Shown here: piece after piece, positions 7,983 through 36,656 of the stretch
Position numbering within the stretch: the first letter of the stretch is position 1
Layout: each line of letters begins with the position of its first letter
NCBI GenBank assembly: GCA_946965045.2
Contig: OX337235.1
Location: 930,001 to 994,000 of the forward strand
Reading direction: 5' to 3'
Length of the DNA stretch: 64,000 bases
DNA from: Epithemia pelagica
Lineage: Eukaryota; Protista; Bacillariophyta
The notes under the pieces: model-generated
Databases searched by the model: none
What the model was told of the DNA's origin: nothing
What the model saw: the letters and a program-made list of their open reading frames with translations, nothing else
Position numbers and translations under genes: made by a program

Positions 7983-10190
7983 TTCATGAGTCACTGCCTT
8001 GTCGATGAAAGGGATACGTCGTCCTGTTAGGATTTTTAGGATGGAATTCTCGGCGAGCTACACTGGTCGCTAGGAGTACAAGCTACATAGAAACTACCTA
8101 GAAGAGCATCTTATGATAGAGTTGTCTTTCTCGTCCCATGGTGGGTGGTGGGAGGAGACAGGAGACGCATTCGTTGATACTTGATACCGCGTTTGGAATT
8201 CCTGTCGGCTTTTGGTTGCGACTTGCGACGGAAACTCGAAAACGACGCAAAACGCAAACGCAACGGGCTGAACAGCTTACACCATCAAAACAAAACAAAA
8301 GACATCTTGATAGTACAATTTCACGCAATGTCCCTCCCGAACTTGTGCAATACTCGTCCGTCCTATTGTCTTCAATGCCATCCAGCATCTCTTTTTGAAA
8401 GTTCGATATCAACCATCAACTGAGTCGATCCAATAAAACCTAAGAGGCCCGAGCAAATTGTTTACGACTGCTACTACTACTACGAGTACGAGTAGACGAG
8501 TATCCAGTATCCAACAAATATCCCCACCAAGGACATTCAAGGAGTCATCAATTCTGTTGTCCAGGTCATAAAGCTTGTGTCCACGTATGTTGGTTGGGAT
8601 TATCTCAACCAATAACATCAGAGGAAACTATGTACACCTCACCAAAATGCTTCTGACACTGCAGGTAGCTTGAGAATCTCGGGGCAGACGCTTTCCCTCG
8701 ATTCTCAAATCACGAATAGACTGTCGCTTCTCCTCTTTCGACTTCCGAGGTGAGGTGCTCACAATTTCAATTTCCACGGTTCCAAAGACTCATAAAATAC
8801 CCAAAGAAACAAAATGAAAGTTACCAGTGGTTTCTTCTCGTGGGGTCTTTCCCTTTTTGTTGGCTTGCCTCTTCTTGTGGATGGCAAAGACCATCTGCGA
8901 GGACTGAGCAGCGGAACTGGCGCCAACAGTAACGGCGTTTGCACTTCCTCCCCGCTGTTTTGGTCCCAAGATCCTTGGTTGCCCGTGGAGGACAAAGACG
9001 ACGGTGCCAATCGAACCTCCATTCCAGCCTTGACGCAGCCCTTTTACAATGAAGTAAACGATGTCCATGCTACTGTCTCTGCCGCGAATACCAAGTTGAT
9101 TCTGAGCGTCAACGGGAACTGGTACCCCGCCTTGGCACGCCTGATGAAGGAAGTGTATATCCCCAAGAATTCATCCTATGAGACCAGTTACTTGTATACC
9201 ACCAGTCCACCCATTGGTAATCCTCAAACGGACAACAATATCCTCAAGGTGGGAAATCTACTTTTCAAGGATGCAGCTCCCCATTTCTACACAGGAGCTC
9301 CACCTATTCTCAACTTACTTGGTGACAAGATTGACAATTCCACTCGTGAATTCTTTCTTTATTTCTACGTACGGCAGTGTCATTTTGAAGCGCATGGGTG
9401 ACACCACCATTAACACATTCTGGGATTTGAAGAATTTGACCGCTGACCGATTCGCCACGTCGGATCCGGCGGGAGAGCCGGGCTTATTCACCAATGCATA
9501 CAGGTGGAGTGTCTTCATCCCGAAGATGACACTTTAGATCCAACTGATCCGGTAGACAATGTGACCATTGGTGAAGAAGCAATAGCATTGAGAGACCAGT
9601 TGTTTAATGAGAACGTCGTCACCATTGGACAGCCCATGTGGCGTAGTATCCCTCATGTGATTGCCAATCACCAGGCCGATGCTGGTCTTCTCTTTCTTCA
9701 TTTGGCTGTGGAAGCTATGCGAGACAATCCAAACACCTTCACTGCCATTTACCTTGATAAGAATACGACTGGTGAAACGTCTGACCCAGACGAGCTGTTG
9801 GCAATGCAGCGAGACCCCTTGGAGGGGAACCGTGTTGGCACCTTTGCCATTGCGAAGACCACCCGCACTCTTACTGCTGAACAGGATAAAGCCGGAGAGG
9901 ACTTTCTCGACGCGTTGAGGTCAGCTGAATTTGATCAAATCCTCGAGGACGTAGGTTTGCGTCGTAACATTGTCGGTTAAATTGCCGATTCGACTGTGCT
10001 GACGCCGACGACAGTTACAGCGGCGGCGATTAAGGATGCAAAAGAGAAAGAAGAAATCATACATATTTATTTTTCCGTTGGAAGTCCACCACTGGCACTT
10101 CAATTCTACTATGCAGCAACGGCTTCATGCGCTGCTGCTTTAATCAAAGAGAGTTACTAATTAAAGAGAGTTACATGGTGTTTATTATTA
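7983..10190 (+). repeat. Inverted segmental duplication, copy A (partner 36464-38863)
   Basis: Blocks such as tcactgccttgtcgatgaaagggatacgtcgtcc (near 7991) and tcaaagagagttactaat (near 10143) have reverse complements near 38820-38855 and 36480-36500. The ModA-like gene and ~800 bp of upstream sequence are shared. Confidence 0.92.
8814..9980 (+). pseudogene. Secreted ModA-like (type-2 periplasmic-binding fold) protein, copy 1, frameshifted
   Basis: Signal peptide plus HLRGL, then LILSVNGNWYP..YLYTTSPP and PMWRSIPHVIA..ADAGLLF. Relative to the intact paralog at 14262 there is a 4-bp insertion near 9355 and a deletion near 9520, splitting it across three ORFs. Confidence 0.8.
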
Positions 10191-23338: not shown

Positions 23339-23429
23339 TACTCCTCTCTAGAGACTCTAGTAGAGGAGTAGTATGGAGGGTAGCACCTCATCACTGACCA
23401 CACATAGAATGTATAGACAACAGACATAG

Positions 23430-24060
23430 TGCCGCGCCGGGTGAGGCGGCCAAAACCTCGAAAATAGCGGCCAAATGACCATGATGGACATCTAGCGTAA
23501 CTCACTCAATATAGGACGCCCATGCCCCAATATCGAGCGACGTCTTCTTCAAACAATGCTCTCGGCCCCTGCGGGCCACTTTTGCTATAGCGGCCATTGT
23601 TATCGAGTTCTTACTCACCATTGTAGGGTCATTTTTTTTTCGTCCACGTAATGGCCGCTAGATTGCCCTTTGGCCGCTACATTGATGGTACTATAAGTCG
23701 ACCACTACGTGCCCTACCATCAAATGGTGCCTACGATGTGTCTATCGTAGTGTAAGGAAGAGCACTTTCAGGTCATATGGGCTATCGGTGGGCGTGATAG
23801 CGCAAACAAACCCCTGCTCGATTTGGCTCGTTTTTGTTGGAACGAGATTTTCATCCGTAACTCGATGTACTGCCGAAGCTCCAATATGGTAGTTCTACAG
23901 TTCATACTTGAAGGGCTTTTACTTTAGGGTCTACCTTCGTGAAACCAACTATCATAACTATCGTAGGTGCCATGGTTATCGCAAAATAGTCGTCCATCGA
24001 TGAGGATTTTCATCTCTCGCGACACGAACCACAATCGATCCTCATCGTCAGTTTCCGCTA
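23430..24060 (+). repeat. Left terminal inverted repeat (unique portion)
   Basis: Reverse complement of 34980-35587 apart from a few substitutions and a 20-bp extra segment at 23758-23777. Confidence 0.93.
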
Positions 24061-24605
24061 CTCGTCTCGTTCAATCTTGATTCTCTGCCCCTCCTTTTTT
24101 GTAGCATTTTAGTTTAGGACCTACTTGAGCGTACCCAAGTCTCAGATTGACCGTAGGCGCCATGGTCATTGAGAATGGGCCATCCATTGATGGAGGCATT
24201 TTTCTCGATGTAGCACGTAGCACACAACATTTCGAGACCGAAGGACGTTGCTACTCGTCTCGTTCAATATTGACTCGCTGCCCCTCCTACTTTGTAGCAT
24301 TTTAGTTTAGGATTTACCTGAGCGTACCCAAGTCTCAGATTGACCGTAGGCGCCATGGTTATTGAGAAGGTGCCATCCATTGATGGAGGCATTTTTCCCG
24401 ATGTAGCACGTAGCACACAACATTTCGAGACCGAAGGACGTTGCTAATCGTCTCGTTCAATATTGACTCTCTTGCCTTCCTACTTTGTAGCATTTTAGTT
24501 TAAAACCTACTTGAGTGTACCCAAGTCTCAGATTGACCGTAGGCGCCATGGTTATTGAGAAGGTGCCATCCATTGATGGAGGCATTTTTCCCGATGTAGC
24601 ACAAA
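24060..24605 (-). repeat. Left subterminal 193-bp tandem array (~3 units)
   Basis: catttcgaga at 24228 and 24421 (period 193). Reverse complement of the right-end array unit. Confidence 0.92.
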
Positions 24606-24758
24606 GCACACGAGATTGGGCAAGCTTCAAATCAATTTTTAAGTGTCGTCTGAAGATGTCGGAGACAGGGGACGATTGAGACGAGAAATGGAAGTGGGGA
24701 GGTCATGGATTACAACAACAGACGAAAGTCTATCACGCAAGCATAAACTTATAGTTTT

Positions 24759-26339
24759 TTATTTTAGAAGAAGTGCGCCACGAACTTTCTTTGGAGATTT
24801 ATAGTGGACATGCTGACTGTGCCGGTAATATGTTGCGAGACGATCTTCTGAGTTGTAGTAGGGTGGTAACTGGTACTCGTTTTTGGGAAGATATGGATGA
24901 ATGGTTTGATCACGCCCTTGATACATGTAGAAATGGGCACGTGGATTGCCTTGGGCACTGGTCAAGAAGCCTCCGGCGTGAACAGTATCGCCTCGCATCA
25001 TGAGGAACGTTCCATAGGGAACGTTGACCACCTCACCCAACTGATGCCTATTCTTCTTGTGGTCCTTGCGGTGCCGCCACAATTCTAAAGTCATTCCGTC
25101 CTCCGTCAGGGGCACAAAAACAGCAAATGGGACACGTTCTCGGAACGGCGCTTTCTTTCGTCCCTTTCCACGAGTCTTGACGTTGCCTTGGGGTGTCCCT
25201 TTCTGTTCAGTCGAACCCTGTTCCTCGTCTGGACTTGGCGTGACCACATCCCATTTGAAATCCAGATGTGGCTCTTGCACCTTTTCAAATGTGGTCTTGA
25301 GGAGCGACAGGTGGATCTGGATACCTTCAGCAAAGGAGTCATCCTCTGCGTACTCCATGTCCACAAGGGCTTGAGCAAGAGTCTTCTTGAACGTTGCCAC
25401 AATTTCAGCTACCCGCTTCTTCCCCCAGGGTGTGAATTCGTCATGTGCCAATAATCCTTCACCGTCAAACATGCGCATTTGGATTTGTGGGGTGTATTGT
25501 TGCACACCCCGCATTCTCTTCGAAATCTTGTCGTCCCCATGCTTCTCCGTTCCGAGAGACCAGACATCACGCAACAATCCAAGAAGCTCTGTCGGAGCGA
25601 CCAAAAAACGTCCTCGTGGATCACCCTCATAATTGATCAACAAGTGGCCATAGTTTTTATTCAGTTCTTTTGCTTTCTCTGCCGGATTTGGTTCCTCCTC
25701 AACCGCTTCCACCTGGTGAGAGTCCTCCGGACTGGGGTTTTGATTGAGTATCGGGGCGTCATATGGAATGCTTGGTTGTGGCTGAACCTGCCCGTATCCT
25801 TCATAAGGGAGCTGCCCCTGAGCCACCAAGACATGGGGCCGATGATGCTCATCATAGAAATGCCCGGGCGTGTAGTGGGAATGTGGAGGATGATGGTATG
25901 GTGGACTGTGGTACTGAGGATGATGGTGTGGTTGAAGGTGGTGTATTTGCGGAGAATTGTAGTGGTGCTGTTGAGTGGCAACATCATGAGGAACAGCAGC
26001 GGCGGGAACAGGATGGTGCAGTTGAAGGTCGTGCGGTTGGTAGTGCTGTTGAATGGCAACATCAGGAGCAGCAGCGGCGGGAACAGGATGGTGCAGTTGA
26101 AGGTCGTGCGGTTGGTAGTGCTGTTGAGTGGCAACATCATGAGGAACAGCAGCAGCGGGAACAGGATGGTGCAGTTGAAGGTCGTGCGGTTGGTAGTGCT
26201 GTTGAATGGCAACATCAGGAGCAGCAGCGGCGGGAACAGGATGGTGCAGTTGAAGGTCGTGCGGTTGGTAGTGCTGTTGAATGGCAACATCAGGAGCAGG
26301 AGCATTACCACCAGAACCACCCATCTTCATCTTCTTCAC
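24759..26339 (-). CDS. Cargo 2OG-Fe(II) dioxygenase (PhyH-like DSBH) with N-terminal His/Gln/Pro repeats; probable 3' half of a fusion gene
   Basis: QEPHLDF (HxD), FVPLT, VNVPYGTFLMMRGDTVHAGG (distal His) and GNPRAHFY (2OG-binding Arg). Alternating 25/26-aa repeats (DVA.QQHYQPHDLQLHHPVPAAA). Confidence 0.82.
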   Translation of the reverse strand: MKKMKMGGSGGNAPAPDVAIQQHYQPHDLQLHHPVPAAAAPDVAIQQHYQPHDLQLHHPVPAAAVPHDVATQQHYQPHDLQLHHPVPAAAAPDVAIQQHYQPHDLQLHHPVPAAAVPHDVATQQHHYNSPQIHHLQPHHHPQYHSPPYHHPPHSHYTPGHFYDEHHRPHVLVAQGQLPYEGYGQVQPQPSIPYDAPILNQNPSPEDSHQVEAVEEEPNPAEKAKELNKNYGHLLINYEGDPRGRFLVAPTELLGLLRDVWSLGTEKHGDDKISKRMRGVQQYTPQIQMRMFDGEGLLAHDEFTPWGKKRVAEIVATFKKTLAQALVDMEYAEDDSFAEGIQIHLSLLKTTFEKVQEPHLDFKWDVVTPSPDEEQGSTEQKGTPQGNVKTRGKGRKKAPFRERVPFAVFVPLTEDGMTLELWRHRKDHKKNRHQLGEVVNVPYGTFLMMRGDTVHAGGFLTSAQGNPRAHFYMYQGRDQTIHPYLPKNEYQLPPYYNSEDRLATYYRHSQHVHYKSPKKVRGALLLK

Positions 26340-26366
26340 CTTCTTCGGAGAATCATCCTGGCTGGA

Positions 26367-27539
26367 TCAACCTCGCTTCTTCTGCACATCCTCATCAGGC
26401 TCCTCACCGCCTTCCTTTGAGGCTGCGATCGTCTTGGTGTCCGAGCTAAGGTTGTAGAATAAAAACAGCTCGTCCCCCTCCGCGATCTCCTTGATCACAC
26501 GAACTAGCAGATTCTTGTCGATACGCACGTTGTAGTCCTTGTGTGCTTCGTCAGGTCCTTCTTCTGTATCGTAGAGGTGATACTGGGGATCATTCATCAA
26601 ATGAAACCCCATGAAAAAGAAATCCTCGTTGTCGGCTTGAACGATGCGTTCTCCGTGCTCTCCAAACTGAATTGCGTACTCGGTCCGACCGACGGTCCGA
26701 GAGGTGATATCCAACCCTGCATACACACCAATCACCTCACCTACTTTGTGCTCTTGTACAGAAAAAAGACCAAACCCGGGGCCTTCTTTTCCCTCTTCAG
26801 CCTTGAGGCCCGACTTCTTGACTGTGAAGATGTGTTTTGTCCCCAGCATAATCTTGAAGATCGGATCATTCTTGAGGGAGAAGCTGAACTGTCGAAACTT
26901 GAGGCACGAGTTGTTTCGAGTTTGCTTGGTTGGGATCCCAATCCCAACGGACTTGGGCACAACTTCCCCAACTTCCAGTCCGTAGTCATTTTTCTTGGGG
27001 GCCGTATTAGAGTTCTTGATGCCTGTGCCTGATTTGCGAATGGGCGCATCTGTCACCGAAAATGTGACGCCAATCTTCTTTGCCACAAACACTCCGTATG
27101 CGTTGATCAGCACAGTGCCATCCTTGATCAAAGTGGACAGAAACTTCAGTCCTCGGATGAAATTGTCCCATGGATCCCGTCCATAGGCCTTGACTTTCTT
27201 TACTGCAGCGACAGCCTCCGCATAATCCTTTTTCCGTTGCTCGCTGAGGCGCTGTTTCAAAGCCGACGCCGAGTCCGTGTATGCATTGTCGTCCTTTAGC
27301 TTGCCGCAACAACTGTCTGCATGCTTTTTCTCGTTGACTTTATGGAGGTCTTCGTCTGTAAGAAACCGATGGCTTGCTCTCGCTTCTTCTGTTGCTGCCA
27401 TTGTTGCTTCGTCTGCTGCTGCCATAGGTGATGGTGAATGTGGCTCCGACTCCGCCTCCGAGGCAGCAACTGCAACATGAGCAAGCGCCTTAAGACGCGA
27501 TTCAGATTGACTTCGTGTTTTCATTGTTCTCCTCTCCAT
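26367..27539 (-). CDS. Cargo SET-domain protein (putative lysine methyltransferase); probable 5' half of a fusion gene
   Basis: GFGLFS..HKVGEVIGVYAG, FHLMND (RxxNH-equivalent), YNVRI and IKEIAEGDELFLFYN. No post-SET cysteines. Confidence 0.85.
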   Translation of the reverse strand: MERRTMKTRSQSESRLKALAHVAVAASEAESEPHSPSPMAAADEATMAATEEARASHRFLTDEDLHKVNEKKHADSCCGKLKDDNAYTDSASALKQRLSEQRKKDYAEAVAAVKKVKAYGRDPWDNFIRGLKFLSTLIKDGTVLINAYGVFVAKKIGVTFSVTDAPIRKSGTGIKNSNTAPKKNDYGLEVGEVVPKSVGIGIPTKQTRNNSCLKFRQFSFSLKNDPIFKIMLGTKHIFTVKKSGLKAEEGKEGPGFGLFSVQEHKVGEVIGVYAGLDITSRTVGRTEYAIQFGEHGERIVQADNEDFFFMGFHLMNDPQYHLYDTEEGPDEAHKDYNVRIDKNLLVRVIKEIAEGDELFLFYNLSSDTKTIAASKEGGEEPDEDVQKKRG

Positions 27540-27966
27540 CTTTCTGTAGAGTAGGGGTTTCTCAGAGAGTCTTGGGTTTTCGAGCGTTTCTCAGACAGAG
27601 AGCGTTCGTCATTGCCTGGTCTGCAGACCACTTGACAAGAAAACAAATCAGACCACACTTGGAAAAAATCTTTCGATTCAACGGGAATACGGTTAAAACG
27701 TTAAATTTTGTTACATATTTCATTATGTTTAGAGTTTAATTAAGGCGGGCGGGCATGCGGAACACGCGCTTTTGTAGCGACTGCTCCACAAAAACTACAT
27801 CTTCCCTCCAACATCGTTCCACAGTTCATTCAACAATCAACCATGTGCTTGCTTGCAAGTTGAAAAGATGCTTTTGACCGCTAATGGAGATTGGACACAC
27901 AAACAGCAATTCTCAATAACCTCTTAGAAACTTGAGAAGACCAAAACGCACGAGAACGATACAGCA

Positions 27967-30900
27967 ATGGAACCACCGCCGCCGAGGCCTAAATCATGTG
28001 GTTTGGGGATTGGATCGAGATGTTTCATGAGGCGTGGAGACATCCCATGCATTATTGTTGAAGCAGTCGAATTTCATAAGTGGATGGTCGCTGGAGTGGA
28101 CGAAAGAGGAAATCTAACAGAGCTAAGAAATGAACGCTCTTCCCCACAGCTTCGATTCCCCAAGAAAGATGAAGGTTTTCCTGGACAACCAGATCCAGTT
28201 GCAGCAACCGGACCTCGACCTACGATCTCAACAACAACCACAGTATCAAATACTCCAGTTCCAGCCGAAACCGCAGCAAGGACAATGACAACGGCATCGA
28301 GGACAGCAACATCCACGTCAATGCCAACGGCAACCACGACAACGACAACGAGCGCGACAACGAGCGCGACAACGAGCGCGACAACGAGCGCGACAACGAC
28401 AACGAACACCCCAGTCGAGACGACAGCAAGGCCGACGGCAGCGGCATCGACAGCAGGAACAACCACACCAATGCAATCGGTAATGACAACGACTGCTGCA
28501 CCAACGACCACGGCAACGACCACTGCAACGACCACTGCAACGACCGCAGCAACGACAACGACTTCAGAGGCTCCTCGCACTGTTGGTGGAGTGATATTAA
28601 CAGATGTAAGCGACGATGAAGAAATTGAAGTTTTGGCACAAGCGGCGATCCTGGACAACGCTCAAGGTCAAGATGCACCTCCGAACAATCAGAACAACCC
28701 ACCAACGACCAGGCAAAATGATGATGAAGATAGTGACAACGAACATGAAGATCAGGATGAAGATGCAGCTGCCGATGAAGAACTCGAAGAAGATGTACCC
28801 GTGGAACTTGTCTATGATGACGAGGATGACGGAGCTGAACAAGAACAAGCACAAGCACGCCAATTGGCTTTCGGGGCTTTGGTTGAAAGAGACGAAGATC
28901 GTCACAGGCATAAAATGGAGCAATACAAGCTTACCAAAGACCATCTTATTGAAAGCAACTGGACCGTAGTCGTCAAGCCTCCCAAGAAAAAAGGAATCGA
29001 CATTGGAGATCGAGTTCACAAGAATGGTAACAATGCTCAATGGGGAACAGTTGTCGACGGGAAGAAGAATCCAGTGGCAAAAGGAAACCTATGGACTGTG
29101 CTTTTTGACGGAGAGAGTGAGCCAACGACCAATTTAACGGGTCAACAGCTACGAAGGAAAGAGGACAAAAGAAGATTTGAGTGGAAGATAGTCGAGGATT
29201 CATCGCCGGATCATCCAGTGTCGGACTATGAGAAGAATGCAATCGTTGGCTACAACTTCGGCAAAAGGATGAGTAAAAGTGAAATAAGCCACGAGAATGA
29301 AAAATACTCCTTTCCATTTCTTGACTTGTTGATGCACTTCTGGCCAGGTAAGTCAGCACTACTCTTTGTTTCTACATCGCAGAAGTTCAACAGTCTCACT
29401 TTCTTGCAATCGGCCTCTGTACAGGGAACTGGCAAAATCAGTTGAGAGTCCTTAATCTTAGTTTAGATCGATTGAATCAAAAGCGTGATAAAAAGAAGAA
29501 AATTCGAATGGTTACGGAAGGCGAGTGGTGGAAAGTTTGGGGGATTATCGTCGCGGCAAGTCCCCTTGGTGTAGGAGGAAAGGCTCTTTTTCAGGATCCT
29601 AGCACTCGTCGGTTATCACCACATGTAAATCTTGGAACGAAAGGCGAAAACATCATGGCAGAGAGTAGGTTCAACGACATTAAGACGCATCTCTATCATG
29701 CCTTCAGGGGGACGGATCCGAATGACAAATGGAATGAAATCCGTCCCCTGATTGATGGGTTCAATGAGAACCGCCGACAAATGATTGCGTCGTCCGTGGT
29801 TCAAGTGCTTGACGAGTCGATGAGTGCGTTTCGACCACGAACGACCAAGCAATCTTTGTTGCCGCATATCTCATTTATTGCCCGCAAGCCCAAACCTCTT
29901 GGGACGGAGTTCAAGGTAAGCTAACACCAGACAGACAATGTTTTGAAGACTTAATGTGTCTGACCTTACTACCTTATTTCATTCACAGGTGGTCGCCAAC
30001 ACCACGACAGGGTGTCTGACCCATCTTGAAATCCAAGAAGGAAGAGTCCCAATGCGGCGTAAGAAGTTTGTCGCGAAGTCTGGTCCATCGGGCGGCTGCA
30101 CACTGCGGCTTGTCGAAGGTTCACAATACAGTGGACAGCTGTCAAGCGCACGCCACGAAGCTGGAAAGGCCTCCAAGCGCTACCTGTATTTAGGCGACTC
30201 CTGGTTTGGAAGTGTCCAGGTCGCTGAATGCCTCAAGTGTTCGTGGAGGGAACAGGACGATCGACGCAATCGCACTTCCTTTCCGTTCTACGTGGACAAA
30301 GAGAAAGGGCTGAACACGGATGGACATGAGTTCATTGGTGCTGTGAAGACAGCGCACTCATGGTTTCCCAAGAAACAGATCGAGAAGCAGATGAAGTCTT
30401 TTCCATCCGGAGCCTACCTTGTCATGGAGTGTACTGCCCCTGTCACTGGAGTGAAGCTCGTAGCGGTTGGGTACAAGTACAATACAAGGAAGGTTCTTCT
30501 CTTTGTCATGACCAAAGATGCCGGGCATACTCAACCGGGCGCACCATACATTGCTCGCTTCACAGATGTGTTTGGAAATATCAAGCAGCGGAGAGTCGAG
30601 CGTCCCCACTGTATTTCAAAATACTTTCGGCACGCCAATGCAATTGACCGGCACAATCACATCCGTCAGGGTCTTCTACGCCTCGAAGAACTATGGTTAA
30701 CTAAAAATCCGTGGTTTCGGATTGTGACGACAGTCTTCGGTATGACGGTGGTTGATTGTTATCTTGCACTGCGTTTTCACATGCAAGTGGAACCTTTCCT
30801 GAATACCTCAATCCACGACTTTGCGGATATGCTGGCTTATGACTTAATCAACAATCCATATTCCGAACGCAGTTCAGTTGAACGAAGAGCGGGTGTGCTT

Positions 30901-31302
30901 GAAAGCTTGCCAGTGACAAACAACCTTTCGGTGTGTACAGATGCCTCCGTAACTGTGCCATCCAGTGTTGGCCATACCTGTTCAAGCAGTATATCACCCG
31001 CGTCCGTATTTTCTGAGCTTACAATTGATTCGGTCGTTTGTCACAGCGTTGTTGAACAGGACAACGTTTCTTCATCAGACCAAAGAGGCATGAAGCGTAA
31101 ATGTGTTATTTGTAAGAATGACACGCGAGCCATGTGTGGCCATCCACAATGCCGCATGTTCACCAAGACTTGGCGCTCGATAACCTACGTGGGAACACCA
31201 GTGTGCAAGCCATCTGTGGGCATTCGATATGGGAAACAACGAACTTGTATCGAGCAGCACGCCATGAACTTTGCTGCGGCAAAAGGAGGAAATGCGACTT
31301 AA
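27967..31302 (+). CDS. piggyBac-family (DDE_Tnp_1_7-like) transposase, ~1061 aa; introns 29348-29424 and 29916-29988
   Basis: Splicing two GTAAG..CAG introns joins three ORFs in frame (1381+491+1314 nt = 1062 codons). Catalytic triad in VLDES, LGDSWF and AIDRHN; RKPKPLG.EFK motif; C-terminal Cys/His-rich domain (CVIC..CGHPQC..C..C..H). Confidence 0.92.
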
Positions 31303-31417
31303 TGAAACTTCTGTGTGCACAAGAACTACACTCATTCTACATGTTTGCGCCTCTCTACATATTATGAAATTAGGAAACCACCATGAATAAGAATACTAAC
31401 TATCATTTGTTACCCGC

Positions 31418-31990
31418 TTACGTGATTTTAACACTTTCCTGGTTGGGCCACGTCTCCGTTGCTTTGTCATAGAGCGACATGAATGCATTCATCCCAGTAA
31501 GACTCATTCGCACAGTAATGATCATGGGTCCCATTGTCACCTTGGTATCCAAGGAGTGAGAGGTCTCAATGGTGAGTTCTCCTTTGACAAGGGACCCATT
31601 TTTGGAACGGAACTTCTTGGAGCGAATTTTGTTGTGAACCGATCCGACTGGGATGACGATGTCAGGCATCGAATCGTCCTTCTTGTCACGGCCAAACGCG
31701 CAAATTGATAGCATTCCACCGTTGGTACCATACCTGGAGCGCTGTAAAAGAATCACGCCTCGATCCACAACAAGTGTCCCCTTTTCTCCTTTCTCCCCGA
31801 GAGTGGCGTCTTGAAGGTGTACGTTCACACCCGCTTCACCGTAGATGGTTAAGCGGCTTCCTTGGAGCTCGATGTTGCTCCCCGTATCTTGTACGAGGTG
31901 AAAGCCGTTAGGAAGGAGAATCCGATTGCGCGATTCATTCTCGTGTTCGGACATTGTACTTCGATCCGTCCTAAGCATAGAGAGAATCAA
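31418..31990 (-). CDS. Cargo ORF of unknown function (beta-strand-rich, ~180-190 aa)
   Basis: Non-repetitive ORF inside the TIRs, convergent with the transposase. No family recognised. Confidence 0.5.
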   Translation of the reverse strand: MILSMLRTDRSTMSEHENESRNRILLPNGFHLVQDTGSNIELQGSRLTIYGEAGVNVHLQDATLGEKGEKGTLVVDRGVILLQRSRYGTNGGMLSICAFGRDKKDDSMPDIVIPVGSVHNKIRSKKFRSKNGSLVKGELTIETSHSLDTKVTMGPMIITVRMSLTGMNAFMSLYDKATETWPNQESVKIT

Positions 31991-32393
31991 TGAGTCGAGG
32001 TTATTGCCACCATTGTAAGCAATGATTTAGATGCCGCGGAACCACTTACTTCTACGCTCGTTTTGATTTGCAAACAAAAGCTCTTTCCTCAGGTGAGCAC
32101 TTCATTCAGGTGGCCTATCGATTCTCTCCTCTCCTTCGGAAAAGCTCTTACGTCGTAAAATCGATTTCTCAGACGACATGTAGTAAACCTCATTTGATTT
32201 GGGGGAACGGTTGGGGACTTCCTACTATTGCCACTCGGGAGCAATTACGAAAGTGTGACAAGTTACTTAAGAAAATTTTCTTCCGTTGAGCGTTGAGCCG
32301 CAAGCCGGCTTCCCATACGAGATCCGATTTTATGGTGAGACGTCACATCAATCAAACATCAACGAGAGACAGAGCCGACAGCGACCTTCATAA

Positions 32394-32978
32394 AACGGCG
32401 TCAACGAGAAACACATCAAGAACAACTGCAACTACAACAACAAAAGCAACAACACAATATCACTCTATATCGACAAGCGCCGTGTTAGTGCGCGCCTTCA
32501 AAACCGCACACACACAAGTGTTGTTCGAACCAGTGTGTCAAAATCTGCCGTGCGCCCAACTGAACAAGGTGCCCTCAAGAAAACCAAAATCAAGGCAGAG
32601 ACAGCAACCATTGGAAAGGCAGAATTGCTCTCGGAAGGATTGGATCAAGAATGTGGGGACAAAACCGTAGTTGTTCTTGGAACCGTTGAAGAATCAATCA
32701 CCAAGATTTGCGACAATTTAGAGGAAGAAGGATTGAATGGTGGAGACAAGACTCCAGTACGCCACCTGAAAATCAAGTTTGCCGACGACCTTAGCCCAGT
32801 CAACGAGGAGATCGAAAAGCCTGCATCACGTTTCTCAATCATGAGCAGCATCTCGATGCGTAGTGCTCAGACTGTATCCTCCCGTGGAACTGCTGTTGAT
32901 AGCGATCTTTCTTTCGACTTTGCCGAGACCCAACAAGATGACTGCGAGAATCTTTACGACAACTACATGCAGTCCTAA
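32394..32978 (+). CDS. Possible cargo ORF (acidic/Ser-rich C-terminus), start uncertain
   Basis: The frame of ORF 32535-32978 is open from 32394 but has no ATG there. No family recognised. Confidence 0.25.
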   Translation, partial: NGVNEKHIKNNCNYNNKSNNTISLYIDKRRVSARLQNRTHTSVVRTSVSKSAVRPTEQGALKKTKIKAETATIGKAELLSEGLDQECGDKTVVVLGTVEESITKICDNLEEEGLNGGDKTPVRHLKIKFADDLSPVNEEIEKPASRFSIMSSISMRSAQTVSSRGTAVDSDLSFDFAETQQDDCENLYDNYMQS

Positions 32979-33129
32979 ACAAGGTTGAACTAGATATAAA
33001 TCAAAATAGCATTGACTATTCTTCAACTTCCTTGAATCATCACTCAGAAGTCATAGAAACTTACGGATTCAAAGGGCAAACTACCAAATGGAAACACCAC
33101 TTCCGTTGATGGTCGCTACTAGGATAATA

Positions 33130-34980
33130 AACACCATGGCACCTACGGTCAATCTGAGACCTGGGTACGCTCGAGTAGGTCCTAAACTAAAATGCTACAA
33201 AGTAGGAGGGGCAGCGAGTCCAAATTGAAGGAGCAAATCGCAACGTCCTTCGGTCTCGAAATGTTGTGTGCTACGTGCTACATCGAGAAAAAAATGCCTC
33301 CATCAATGGATGGCACCTTCTCAATGACCATGGCGCCTACGGTCAATCTGAGACTTGGGTACGCTCAGGTAGATCCTAAACTAAAATGCTACAAAGTAGG
33401 AAGGCAAGCGAGTCAATATTGAACGAGACGAGTAGCAACGTCCTTCGGTCTCGAAATGTTGTGTGCTACGTGCTACATCGGGAAAAATGCCTCCATCAAT
33501 GGATGGCACCTTCTCAATGACCATGGCGCCTACGGTCAATCTGATACCTCGTTACGCTCAAGTAGGTTCTAAACTAAAATGCTACAAAGTAGGATGGGCA
33601 GAGAGTCAATATGGAACGAGACGAGTAGCAACGTCCTTCGGTCTCGAAATGTTGTGTGCTACGTGCTACATCGGGAAAAATGCCTCCATCAATGGATGGC
33701 ACCTTCTCAATGACAGTGGCGCCTACGGTCAATCGGAAACCTCGTTACGCTCAAGTAGGTTCTAAACTAAAATGCTACAAAGTAGGAAGGCAAGCGAGTC
33801 AATATTGAACGAGACAAGTAGCAACGTCCTTCGGTCTCGAAATGTTGTGTGCTACGTGCTACATCGGGAAAAATGCCTCCAACAATGGATGGCACCTTCT
33901 CAATGACCATGGCGCCTACGGTCAATCTGATACCTCGTTACGCTCAAGTAGATCCTAAACTAAAATGCTACAAAGCAGGAAGGCAAGCGAAACAATATGG
34001 AACGAGACGAGTAGCAACGTCCTTCGGTCTCGAAATGTTGTGTGCTACGTGCTACATCGGGAAAAATGCCTCCATCAATGGATGGCTCCTTCTCAATGAC
34101 CATGGCGCCTACGGTCAATCGGAAACCTCGTTACGCTCAAGTAGATCCTAAACTAAAATACTACAAAGTAGGAGGGGCAGAGAGTCAATATTGAACGAGA
34201 CGAGTAGCAACGTCCTTCGGTCTCGAAATGTTGTGTGCTACGTGCTACATCGGGAAAAATGCCTCCATCAATGGATGGCACCTTCTCAATGACCATGGCG
34301 CCTACGGTCAATCTGATACCTCGTTACGCTCAAGTAGGTTCTAAACTAAAATGCTACAAAGTAGGAAGGCAAGCGAGTCAATATTGAACGAGACGAGTAG
34401 CAACGTCCTTCGGTCTCGAAATGTTGTGTGCTACGTGCTACATCGAAAAAATGCCTCCATCAATGGATGGCACCTTCTCAATGACCATGGTGCCTACGGT
34501 CAATCTGATACCTCGTTACGCTCAAGTAGATCCTAAACTAAAATGCTACAAAGTAGGAAGGCAAGCGAGTCAATATTGAACGAGACGAGTAGCAACGTCC
34601 TTCGGTCTCGAAATGTTGTGTGCTACGTGCTACATCGAGAAAAATGCCTCCATCAATGGATGGCCCATTCTCAATGACCATGGCGCCTACGGTCAATCTG
34701 ATACCTCGTTACGCTCAAGTAGATCCTAAACTAAAATACTACAAAGCAGGAAGGCAAGCGAAACAATATGGAACGAGACGAGTAGCAACGTCCTTCGGTC
34801 TCGAAATGTTGTGTGCTACGTGCTACATCGGGAAAAATGCCTCCATCAATGGATGGCTCCTTCTCAATGACAGTGGCGCCTACGGTCAATCTGATACCTC
34901 GTTACGCTCAAGTAGATCCTAAACTAAAATACTACAAAGTAGGAGGGGCAGAGAGTCAATATTGAACGAGACGATTAGCG
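33130..34980 (+). repeat. Right subterminal 193-bp tandem array (~9.5 units)
   Basis: tccttcggtctcgaaatg at 33246, 33441, 33634, 33827, 34020, 34213, 34406, 34598 and 34791. Confidence 0.96.
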
Positions 34981-35587
34981 GAAACTGACGATGAGGATCG
35001 ATTGTGGTTCGTGTCGCGAGAGATGAAAATCCTCATCGATGGACGACTATTTTGCGATAACCATGGCACCTACGATAGTTATGATAGTTGGTTTCACGAA
35101 GGTAGACCCTAAAGTAAAAGCCCTTCAAGTATGAACTGTAGAACTACCATATTGGAGCTTCGGCAGTACATCGAGTTACGGATGAAAATCTCGTTCCAAC
35201 AAAAACGAGCCAAATCGAGCAGGGGTTTGTTTGCGCTATCACGCCCACCGATAGCCCACCTTACACTACGATAGACACATCGTAGGCACCATTTGATGGT
35301 AGGGCACGTAGTGGTCGACTTATAGTACCGTCAATGTAGCGGCCAAAGGGCAATCTAGCGGCCATTACGTGGACGAAAAAAAAAATGACCCTACAATGGT
35401 GAGTTAGAACTCGATAACCATGGCCGCTATAGCAAAAGTGGCCCGCAGGGGCCGAGAGCATTGTTTGAAGAAGACGTCGCTCGATATTGGGGCATGGGCG
35501 TCCTATATTGAGTGAGTTACGCTAGATGTCCATCATGGTCATTTGGCCGCTATTTTCGAGGTTTTGGCCGCCTCACCCGGCGCGGCA
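34980..35587 (-). repeat. Right terminal inverted repeat (unique portion)
   Basis: Reverse complement of 23430-24060. Confidence 0.93.
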
Positions 35588-36656
35588 ATAGACCTACGGT
35601 GGACAAACGCCTATGCGTCTTAACCCTATCTCTACCTAACCTCTCCCCAAACTCCAAACTCCAAAAGCACTGACCACAGACCGTGCATCGACTTCCATTG
35701 GACCACAGGTCTTCACAACGTTGACAGGCTTTGCTCATGACTCATGACCAAGAGATCAATTGGAAGATCGAAGGAAGTGACGAGGTCATTCGGGTTTGCA
35801 AAATTTGGCACCTACAATGGCATTCTGTAAAGAAGTTGAGAATGCGTTGAAAAAATTTTTGTTCTCAAAGACCAAAGACAGCCAATGGTACATACAATCC
35901 CTTGTATCGGCAAAGATCACGCTCGAACTGGACTCGTATGGATTGCAATGGCGCAGATACAGAACAAAGAATGACTGTTCTTGTAGGGAATCTATTTCTC
36001 TGATATCAACATGCTGAGACTCACAGGTGTGATGTGTACTCGTGGGGAAGACCGTCTGTGGCAACGGAGCTTGGGTTCCAAAGGGGAGATCTCTTGATGC
36101 AGTCGTCTTGGCCGTTGTTCTTTTTCGAATGGGGTGTCCATCTTATTGTCTCATACATCCTGACTTGTCTTCGATCCAATGTCGGAGGGCACAAAAGGCT
36201 TCCTTGGTTTTGATCGAGTGATCCGGTCCGACTTGGTGTAAACCCGTAGTGGCGTACAACAAGATCCCGTTGGCCATAATCTTTCCGATGGATTTTGTCG
36301 CAACGGGATTCTTCACCAATTTTGGACGCGGGTTTGCCACAATCCACGATGCTGACGACGGAAAACTTGCTTGTTTCTGATACATGGTCCTCAGGTAACA
36401 GACTACGAAAATGTTGCGCAGGAGAGCATAGTTAATGACACAAGTGTCGCAATGTAATAACAAGCACATGTAACTCTGTTTGATTAGTAACTCTCTTTGA
36501 TGAAAGCAGCAGCGTATGAAAACCTTTGCTGCATATCAGAATTGAAGTGTCAGAGGTAGACTTCATTTGAAATAAATGTAAGCTTTCTTCTCTTCTGGAT
36601 CCTTAGTTGTTGCCGTTGCGATTGCCATTGCCTAAGCTTTCTTCTCTTCTGGATCC

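Follow-up and report, generated by a model that had tools for sequence, protein, structure and literature searches.

We analyzed a 64,000-nucleotide stretch of the genome of the diatom Epithemia pelagica (contig OX337235.1, positions 930,001 to 994,000; hereafter, the window, whose own numbering is used throughout), in which a minus-strand reading frame at 27539..24759 encodes a SET-like domain followed by a predicted 2-oxoglutarate (2OG)/Fe(II) dioxygenase domain. Translation of this interval gives 927 codons with a single internal stop, at codon 391, in agreement with a sequence-only reading of the window that had described one frame split by one TGA. Upstream of the stop lies an N-terminal open reading frame (ORF) of 390 codons with an ATG start (27539..26370, minus strand), which comprises a conserved N-terminal region of unassigned fold and then the SET-like domain, and which is 44–55% identical to the paralogues P0164, P0004, and P0005. 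Nine sense codons separate the premature TGA (26369..26367, minus strand) from a C-terminal ORF (26339..24762, minus strand) that has 526 codons when counted from a GTG and 523 from the ATG chosen by gene callers, and that ends with a TAA at 24761..24759. Translated across the junction, the frame reads KKRG*SSQDDSPKKVKKM. No further copy of the gene was found inside the window.

The stop is private to the window copy. We compared it with five sister copies (L002, L003, L006, L007, and L008) on other contigs of the ENA assembly ERZ21939226, which also contains the proteins of the window and so evidently represents the same genome. At the first base of codon 391, the six-copy DNA alignment has a T for the window and a C for every one of the five sisters (column TCCCCC), each of which thus has the arginine codon CGA at the position of 26367–26369, where the sequence-only reading had proposed to look for it. 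The majority sequence of the six copies is 2781 nt long and its sole stop is the terminal one, which upholds the earlier claim that changing TGA to CGA restores the motif KKRGRS and a protein of 926 codons. Predicted proteins tell the same story: P0012, an uninterrupted product of 921 amino acids, reads ...DVQKKRGRSSQDDSPKK... across this point (KKRGRSS), as P0009 does (KKRGRSS), and P0010 reads KKQGRSS. All three read through with an arginine at the stop position and belong to the 90% cluster of the near-identical fragments of the window; an uninterrupted junction (KKHGRPS) is likewise found in P0004, a paralogue with 50% identity. Because five sisters have CGA and the majority sequence is open for 926 codons, the common frame of the two ORFs is not a matter of chance. 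From these comparisons we conclude that the two ORFs are very probably a single gene of 926 codons, free of introns and carried as an accessory by a piggyBac-like transposon of ~12.2 kb, and broken in the window copy by a C-to-T change at a CpG in the codon for Arg-391.

An intron spanning the TGA was considered and rejected: the in-frame GT..AG spans there are only 14–30 nt, which is too short, and the sister copies are open in any case.

Between the two domains lies a His/Gln/Pro-rich linker (25689..26366, minus strand; codons 392–617) that starts with the basic segment KKVKKMK and is of the same type as the interdomain linker of the paralogue L001. It is encoded by a 75-nt tandem repeat present in 4.4 copies (25965–26303, minus strand), a segment from which sister L007 has lost 153 nt. 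Upstream of the gene, an intergenic region (27540..27966) separates it from a divergent ORF of 492 codons (27967–29445). Here 11 nt are missing at 27733/27734 from the window copy only; they are kept in the other five copies and in contigs assembled from public reads.

The carrier transposon and the decay of its copies

The gene is contained in a piggyBac-like DNA transposon of 12.2 kb (23430..35587) with inverted terminal repeats and the termini TGCCGCGCC.../...GGCGCGGCA, flanked by the target-site duplication ATAG on the left (23426..23429) and on the right (35588..35591). At least seven copies are present in this genome, and we compared the termini and flanks of five of them. The termini are identical between copies, and the window element and L002 share 98.3% identity across 10.2 kb. 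Four complete copies have inverted ends and 4-bp duplications, which are ATAG in the window, CTAG in L002 and L006, and CTAT in L007, compared with the canonical TTAA of piggyBac, and the flanking DNA is different each time. The inverted ends are kilobase-long (23430–24617 and 33133–35587) and consist partly of ~193-nt tandem units, more of which are found at the right end.

Assignment to the piggyBac group rests on a plus-strand ORF at 29442–29921 that matches the Pfam family DDE_Tnp_1_7 (35 bits against a threshold of 22.4; E = 1.3e-8), a match covering profile positions 75–149 only and hence part of the DDE domain. The same family is recorded in L002, L006, L007, and L008. The remainder of the transposase catalytic domain was not located, and a neighboring ORF of 448 amino acids had no match to solved structures. 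On the plus strand, the interval 27967–31302 holds three consecutive ORFs of 492, 160, and 448 codons in three different frames, of which only the middle one matches piggyBac transposase. This three-way split recurs in other copies, which makes introns or a multi-gene layout likelier than decay as its cause.

A second, diverged element family, represented by L005, has ends that are 83–85% identical and carries a transposase and a SET paralogue; no dioxygenase was detectable in it. Paralogues of the SET module are multi-copy in the genome (e.g., L005:7827–8735 and the P0165 cluster, with 19 members), and at least one of them adjoins a piggyBac transposase without a dioxygenase domain.

The inserted copies appear, from their sequences, to be in neutral decay with a deamination signature. 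In the window copy, the gene has seven private substitutions and no indels; six of the seven are CpG-to-TpG/CpA changes, and R391* is among them, which accords with the origin by CpG transition that the sequence-only reading had claimed for the stop. Pooled over the six copies, we counted 49 nonsynonymous, 17 synonymous, and four stop changes (2157 nonsynonymous and 621 synonymous sites), a ratio of nonsynonymous to synonymous rates (dN/dS) of ~0.9, and CpG-type changes made up 25 of 70 compared with ~10% of sites in CpG. CpG methylation of transposons is established for diatoms, and the decay pattern fits it. Most sisters are damaged in ways of their own: L002 has lost its start codon and has two 1-nt deletions, a 7-nt insertion, and one stop; L007 has deletions of 41 nt and 153 nt; L008 has one stop and a 19-nt deletion; and the gene is partial in L003. 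A nonsense change in one decaying copy is an ordinary event.

The two domains and their fusion

By sequence comparison, the predicted fused protein consists of a conserved N-terminal region, a SET-like domain, a repeat-rich linker, and a PhyH-like dioxygenase. The SET-like domain (26451..26777, minus strand; residues 255–363 in the numbering of the 926-codon frame, which we use for all residues) scores 18.1 bits with the Pfam SET profile in the window copy, below the threshold of 22.4. Four paralogues that are 44–55% identical pass this threshold (PF00856, 25.0–30.7 bits, profile positions 1–105), a profile of the family matches the SET domains of EZH2 and MLL1 (E = 6e-4 to 8e-4), and the ESM-Atlas feature neighbors of the N-terminal domain are SET clusters. 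The GxG motif is present as GFG and is invariant in the family, and the segment GDELFLFY aligns with GEELTYDY of MLL1, with the final tyrosine kept. Homology to SET domains appears well supported by these matches.

The dioxygenase domain (24762..25688, minus strand; codons 618–926) was characterized with AlphaFold2, Foldseek, and VIA-align. At E ≤ 1, Pfam returned neither PhyH (PF05721) nor any other 2OG-oxygenase family for the 526-codon ORF or for P0012, in which it found SET only. An exhaustive profile search recovered 274 representative relatives of the domain, and conservation was counted in an alignment of 35 relatives. Invariant in these are Q755, H758, D760, a proline, a tryptophan, D851, H854, and a glycine; R849, R867, and H869 are nearly so. 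The predicted iron-binding triad is made up of the HxD motif His-Leu-Asp (codons 758–760; 25260..25268, minus strand) and a distal histidine (codon 854; 24978..24980, minus strand) in the motif RGDTVHAGG, which aligns with VVHAGG of FtmOx1; all three residues, H758, D760, and H854, are intact in the window copy. R867 (24939..24941, minus strand; motif NPRAHFY) is conserved in at least 90% of aligned members and is predicted to bind the C5 carboxylate of 2-oxoglutarate because it is placed 13 residues after the distal histidine.

The AlphaFold2 model of the dioxygenase domain is confident, with a predicted local distance difference test score (pLDDT) of 87.7 and a predicted template modeling score of 0.86. 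All 50 of the 50 Foldseek matches listed are 2OG oxygenases, including FtmOx1, AndA, DAOCS, SnoN, KanJ, and OkaE, with E values down to 8.5e-7 overall and of ~1e-6 for FtmOx1, AndA, and DAOCS. VIA-align superposed 193–196 residues at 3.5 Å on AsqJ, OkaE, AndA, and FtmOx1 with Z scores of 11–12 (maximum 12.0), and a sequence profile aligned RGDxVHAGG..NPR to VVHAGG..KPR of FtmOx1 (E = 0.02). The closest ESM-Atlas cluster bears PF05721, PhyH, and no JmjC, TET, or JBP enzyme was among the top 50 Foldseek or VIA-align matches or the profile matches to solved structures. The modeled domain thus appears PhyH-like by fold, with a complete predicted triad, and lies outside every Pfam family. The view of the sequence-only reading that the oxygenase is PhyH-like rather than JmjC or TET is sustained, and of the two lines of evidence it had proposed for this domain, structure prediction returned a confident 2OG-oxygenase fold and Pfam profiles returned no match. 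Among structure clusters in the ESM-Atlas, the closest to this domain comprise giant-virus (Nucleocytoviricota) proteins of the PhyH type and 2OG oxygenases of phages.

Relatives of the dioxygenase are found in the diatom Epithemia, among complete MMETSP transcripts, and in marine metagenomes, and are mainly stand-alone proteins. Two of them, P0020 and P0028, are situated among housekeeping genes in other marine eukaryotes, and P0028 carries a Med26/TFIIS N-terminal domain.

The fusion itself recurs in L001 (7991–10954), a 44–45% identical paralogue with the same order of SET domain, His/Pro/Gln linker, and dioxygenase. Both domains of L001 are in one frame and its linker, open for 330 codons, uses a different one, which requires a +1 shift near 9149 and a −1 shift at a T7 run near 10005; these shifts may be mutations or homopolymer errors. 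Neither inverted ends nor a transposase was found within 21 kb of L001, and because it is fused in such surroundings the fusion is likely older than the present transposon family. Elsewhere, this SET module was found in none of the 150 best dioxygenase relatives, Pfam SET in none of ten long relatives, and length-limited searches for fusions returned only copies of this genome. The sequence-only reading had taken the frame for a host gene and possibly a stramenopile-wide fusion, and had suggested searching stramenopiles for SET–dioxygenase proteins; what we found is instead an accessory gene that a piggyBac-like transposon carries in multiple copies, with the fusion detected in this genome only.

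Weighing alternative explanations

Several observations weigh against a broken transposon gene whose intact form is an active two-domain enzyme. None of the public RNA runs searched for the stretch contains it. The ratio dN/dS is near 1 between copies, with no sign of selection on the cargo. The sole uninterrupted copy found, L006 (10001–12766; P0012), departs from the conserved RGD-x2-H motif at two residues (R849Q and D851N); on this evidence the open copy may be catalytically impaired, and because of these two changes no copy here is demonstrably wild type. On the fold side, prolyl hydroxylases match the dioxygenase model at Z scores of 11.1–11.5, effectively tied with the small-molecule oxygenases (Z ~12). 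In the SET-like domain, an invariant H-L-(M/I)-N-D stands in place of NH(S/C)xxPN, the segment that follows is variable and is deleted in P0004, and the AlphaFold2 model, built from a five-sequence alignment, is unusable (pLDDT 37.7). The SET assignment of the sequence-only reading therefore stands in part: the paralogues and the family profile bear it out, the window copy falls below the Pfam threshold, and with a non-canonical NH motif and a poor model the putative methyltransferase activity is uncertain. Lastly, the T at 26369 rests on the assembly, and contigs built from public reads carry the majority C.

That last point invites the explanation that the TGA arose as an error of sequencing or consensus calling, the window copy being in fact open. 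Contigs from three runs of one study, among them runs X1 and X2, have G on the plus strand at 26369, which gives CGA. The same contigs differ from the window at its other six gene-internal private sites and, upstream, at the private 11-nt deletion and three private substitutions; since they depart from the window at every private site, they reflect the consensus of other copies, and the read comparison returns CGA without addressing the window copy itself. The contigs of X1 and X2 also contain a 700-nt skip variant (window 25563–26264, with GCA inserted) that leaves out part of the linker together with the beginning of the dioxygenase region and is probably another copy carrying a deletion. 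Its share of ~13% of local depth implies roughly seven or eight element copies, which fits the seven copy-bearing contigs, and a T present in about one copy in seven or eight would be a minority lost in contig building. Errors in long reads are mostly homopolymer indels. The T is probably a real mutation, because it, like five more of the private changes, is a CpG transition, a deamination signature, and we regard an assembly error as improbable. Still less probable is an arrangement of two separate, adjacent genes in which the first would normally terminate at this stop. Callers did give separate products of 385 and 523 amino acids on this contig, a cluster of methionines (MKM) lies downstream of the stop, and many dioxygenase relatives stand alone; against this, all five sisters have a sense codon at the site, the 50% identical P0004 reads through it, and the linker frame is continuous. 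Recoding of the TGA, as selenocysteine or by programmed read-through, has nothing in its favor beyond the open frame on either side. The site lies in a low-complexity basic linker and not in an active site, and we rule recoding out because all other copies have CGA there.

A broader objection concerns not the stop but the worth of the gene to its carrier: the fused gene might be a passively captured host gene that is useless to the transposon and that, if expressed, would have an ordinary host-type role. The largely stand-alone dioxygenase family, with its relatives in Epithemia and among complete MMETSP transcripts and with P0020 and P0028 amid housekeeping genes, would suit such an origin, as would the fused L001 without inverted ends or transposase nearby and the dN/dS among copies. 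The last of these discriminates poorly, as inserted copies diverge neutrally even when the active element needs the gene. Moreover, the consensus frame has stayed open for all 926 codons with its predicted catalytic residues intact, a related SET module adjoins a piggyBac transposase in the second, diverged family, and in published cases unrelated transposons have repeatedly retained SET and 2OG-oxygenase genes. We consider passive capture unlikely, though a more serious contender than an assembly error.

Proposed role and known systems

We propose the following sequence of events. With the C-to-T change, which hit a CpG of the basic stretch immediately behind the SET domain, the mRNA of the window copy would yield no more than a SET part of 390 residues. 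The full-length enzyme of intact copies would be nuclear, and its target would be chromatin or nucleic acid, either of the element itself or close by; its SET domain would methylate a lysine and its dioxygenase would oxidize or remove a mark. The outcome would be that silencing is countered or transposition favored, as has been proposed for the SET and 2OG-oxygenase genes of other transposons. A nuclear product is suggested because of the basic stretches, the chromatin-type domains, and the Med26-bearing relative. By analogy with these other transposons, it is conceivable, and we hold it tentatively, that the fused enzyme of intact copies is nuclear and that the element benefits from its action on chromatin or nucleic acid.

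To our knowledge, transposon-borne modifiers of chromatin or DNA are rare, and they offer one of the few ways to learn how mobile elements resist silencing. Among the closest precedents are two accessory genes from red algae, one of which involves a match to 2OPW_A, a PhyH-family protein. In red-algal Plavaka elements, the accessory gene PAG2 encodes an N6-adenine methylase fused to SET, and PAG3 joins a ParB-like domain to a 2OG oxygenase for which 2OPW_A was the top HHpred match; tandem repeat arrays adjoin this cargo, and the genes move between transposon superfamilies (bioRxiv 10.1101/2025.02.11.637652). As described, these systems share with ours SET and 2OG-oxygenase accessory genes in transposons and the presence of tandem repeats; they differ in that the two activities reside in separate genes with other partners, on Plavaka, Zisupton, and Mutator elements, whereas the diatom gene combines them in a single polypeptide and travels on a piggyBac-like element. 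Among stramenopiles, HarbingerS and MuDR transposons of Phytophthora encode a SET histone methyltransferase (Kojima and Jurka 2014, as cited in PMC12730594); the description given there likewise has a stramenopile DNA transposon with a SET accessory gene, and it involves another transposase superfamily and includes no dioxygenase domain. Fungal DNA transposons (KDZ, Plavaka, and others) carry TET/JBP dioxygenase genes that have been proposed to counter epigenetic silencing (PMC12730594). These too are 2OG/Fe(II) dioxygenases borne by DNA transposons, but they belong to another branch of the fold, absent from our top 50 fold matches, and are not fused to SET. In SETMAR (Metnase), too, a SET domain is tied to a gene of a DNA transposon (PMC9062482). 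That protein arose in primates by fusion of a host SET gene to a domesticated mariner transposase, whereas here SET and dioxygenase are joined in mobile piggyBac-like copies, apart from the transposase. The structurally similar enzymes AsqJ, OkaE, AndA, FtmOx1, KanJ, and SnoN share the double-stranded beta-helix and the HxD...H triad, and FtmOx1 also VVHAGG..PR, but at 10–16% identity they are small-molecule enzymes of fungal and bacterial secondary metabolism. What sets the present case apart from its precedents is fusion in one polypeptide, a piggyBac-like carrier, and a diatom host.

The window copy itself is an ordinary nonsense-mutated transposon copy. Its interest lies in the combination of a SET-like domain and a PhyH-like 2OG oxygenase in one protein of a young, multi-copy piggyBac-like element of a diatom, a group in which model species have chromatin tools. 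The oxygenase represents an undescribed family of ~270 sequence clusters from marine eukaryotes, and since a relative fused to TFIIS/Med26 exists, the function of the transposon protein could inform that of host genes as well. A further step, which we consider doubtful, is that the fusion is a self-contained "write and oxidize" enzyme with which the piggyBac-like element reprograms chromatin or base methylation at its own copies, and that it has an origin or a logic in common with the red-algal accessory genes. If true, this would point to a widespread anti-silencing toolkit of algal transposons, built on a dioxygenase family without a described function.

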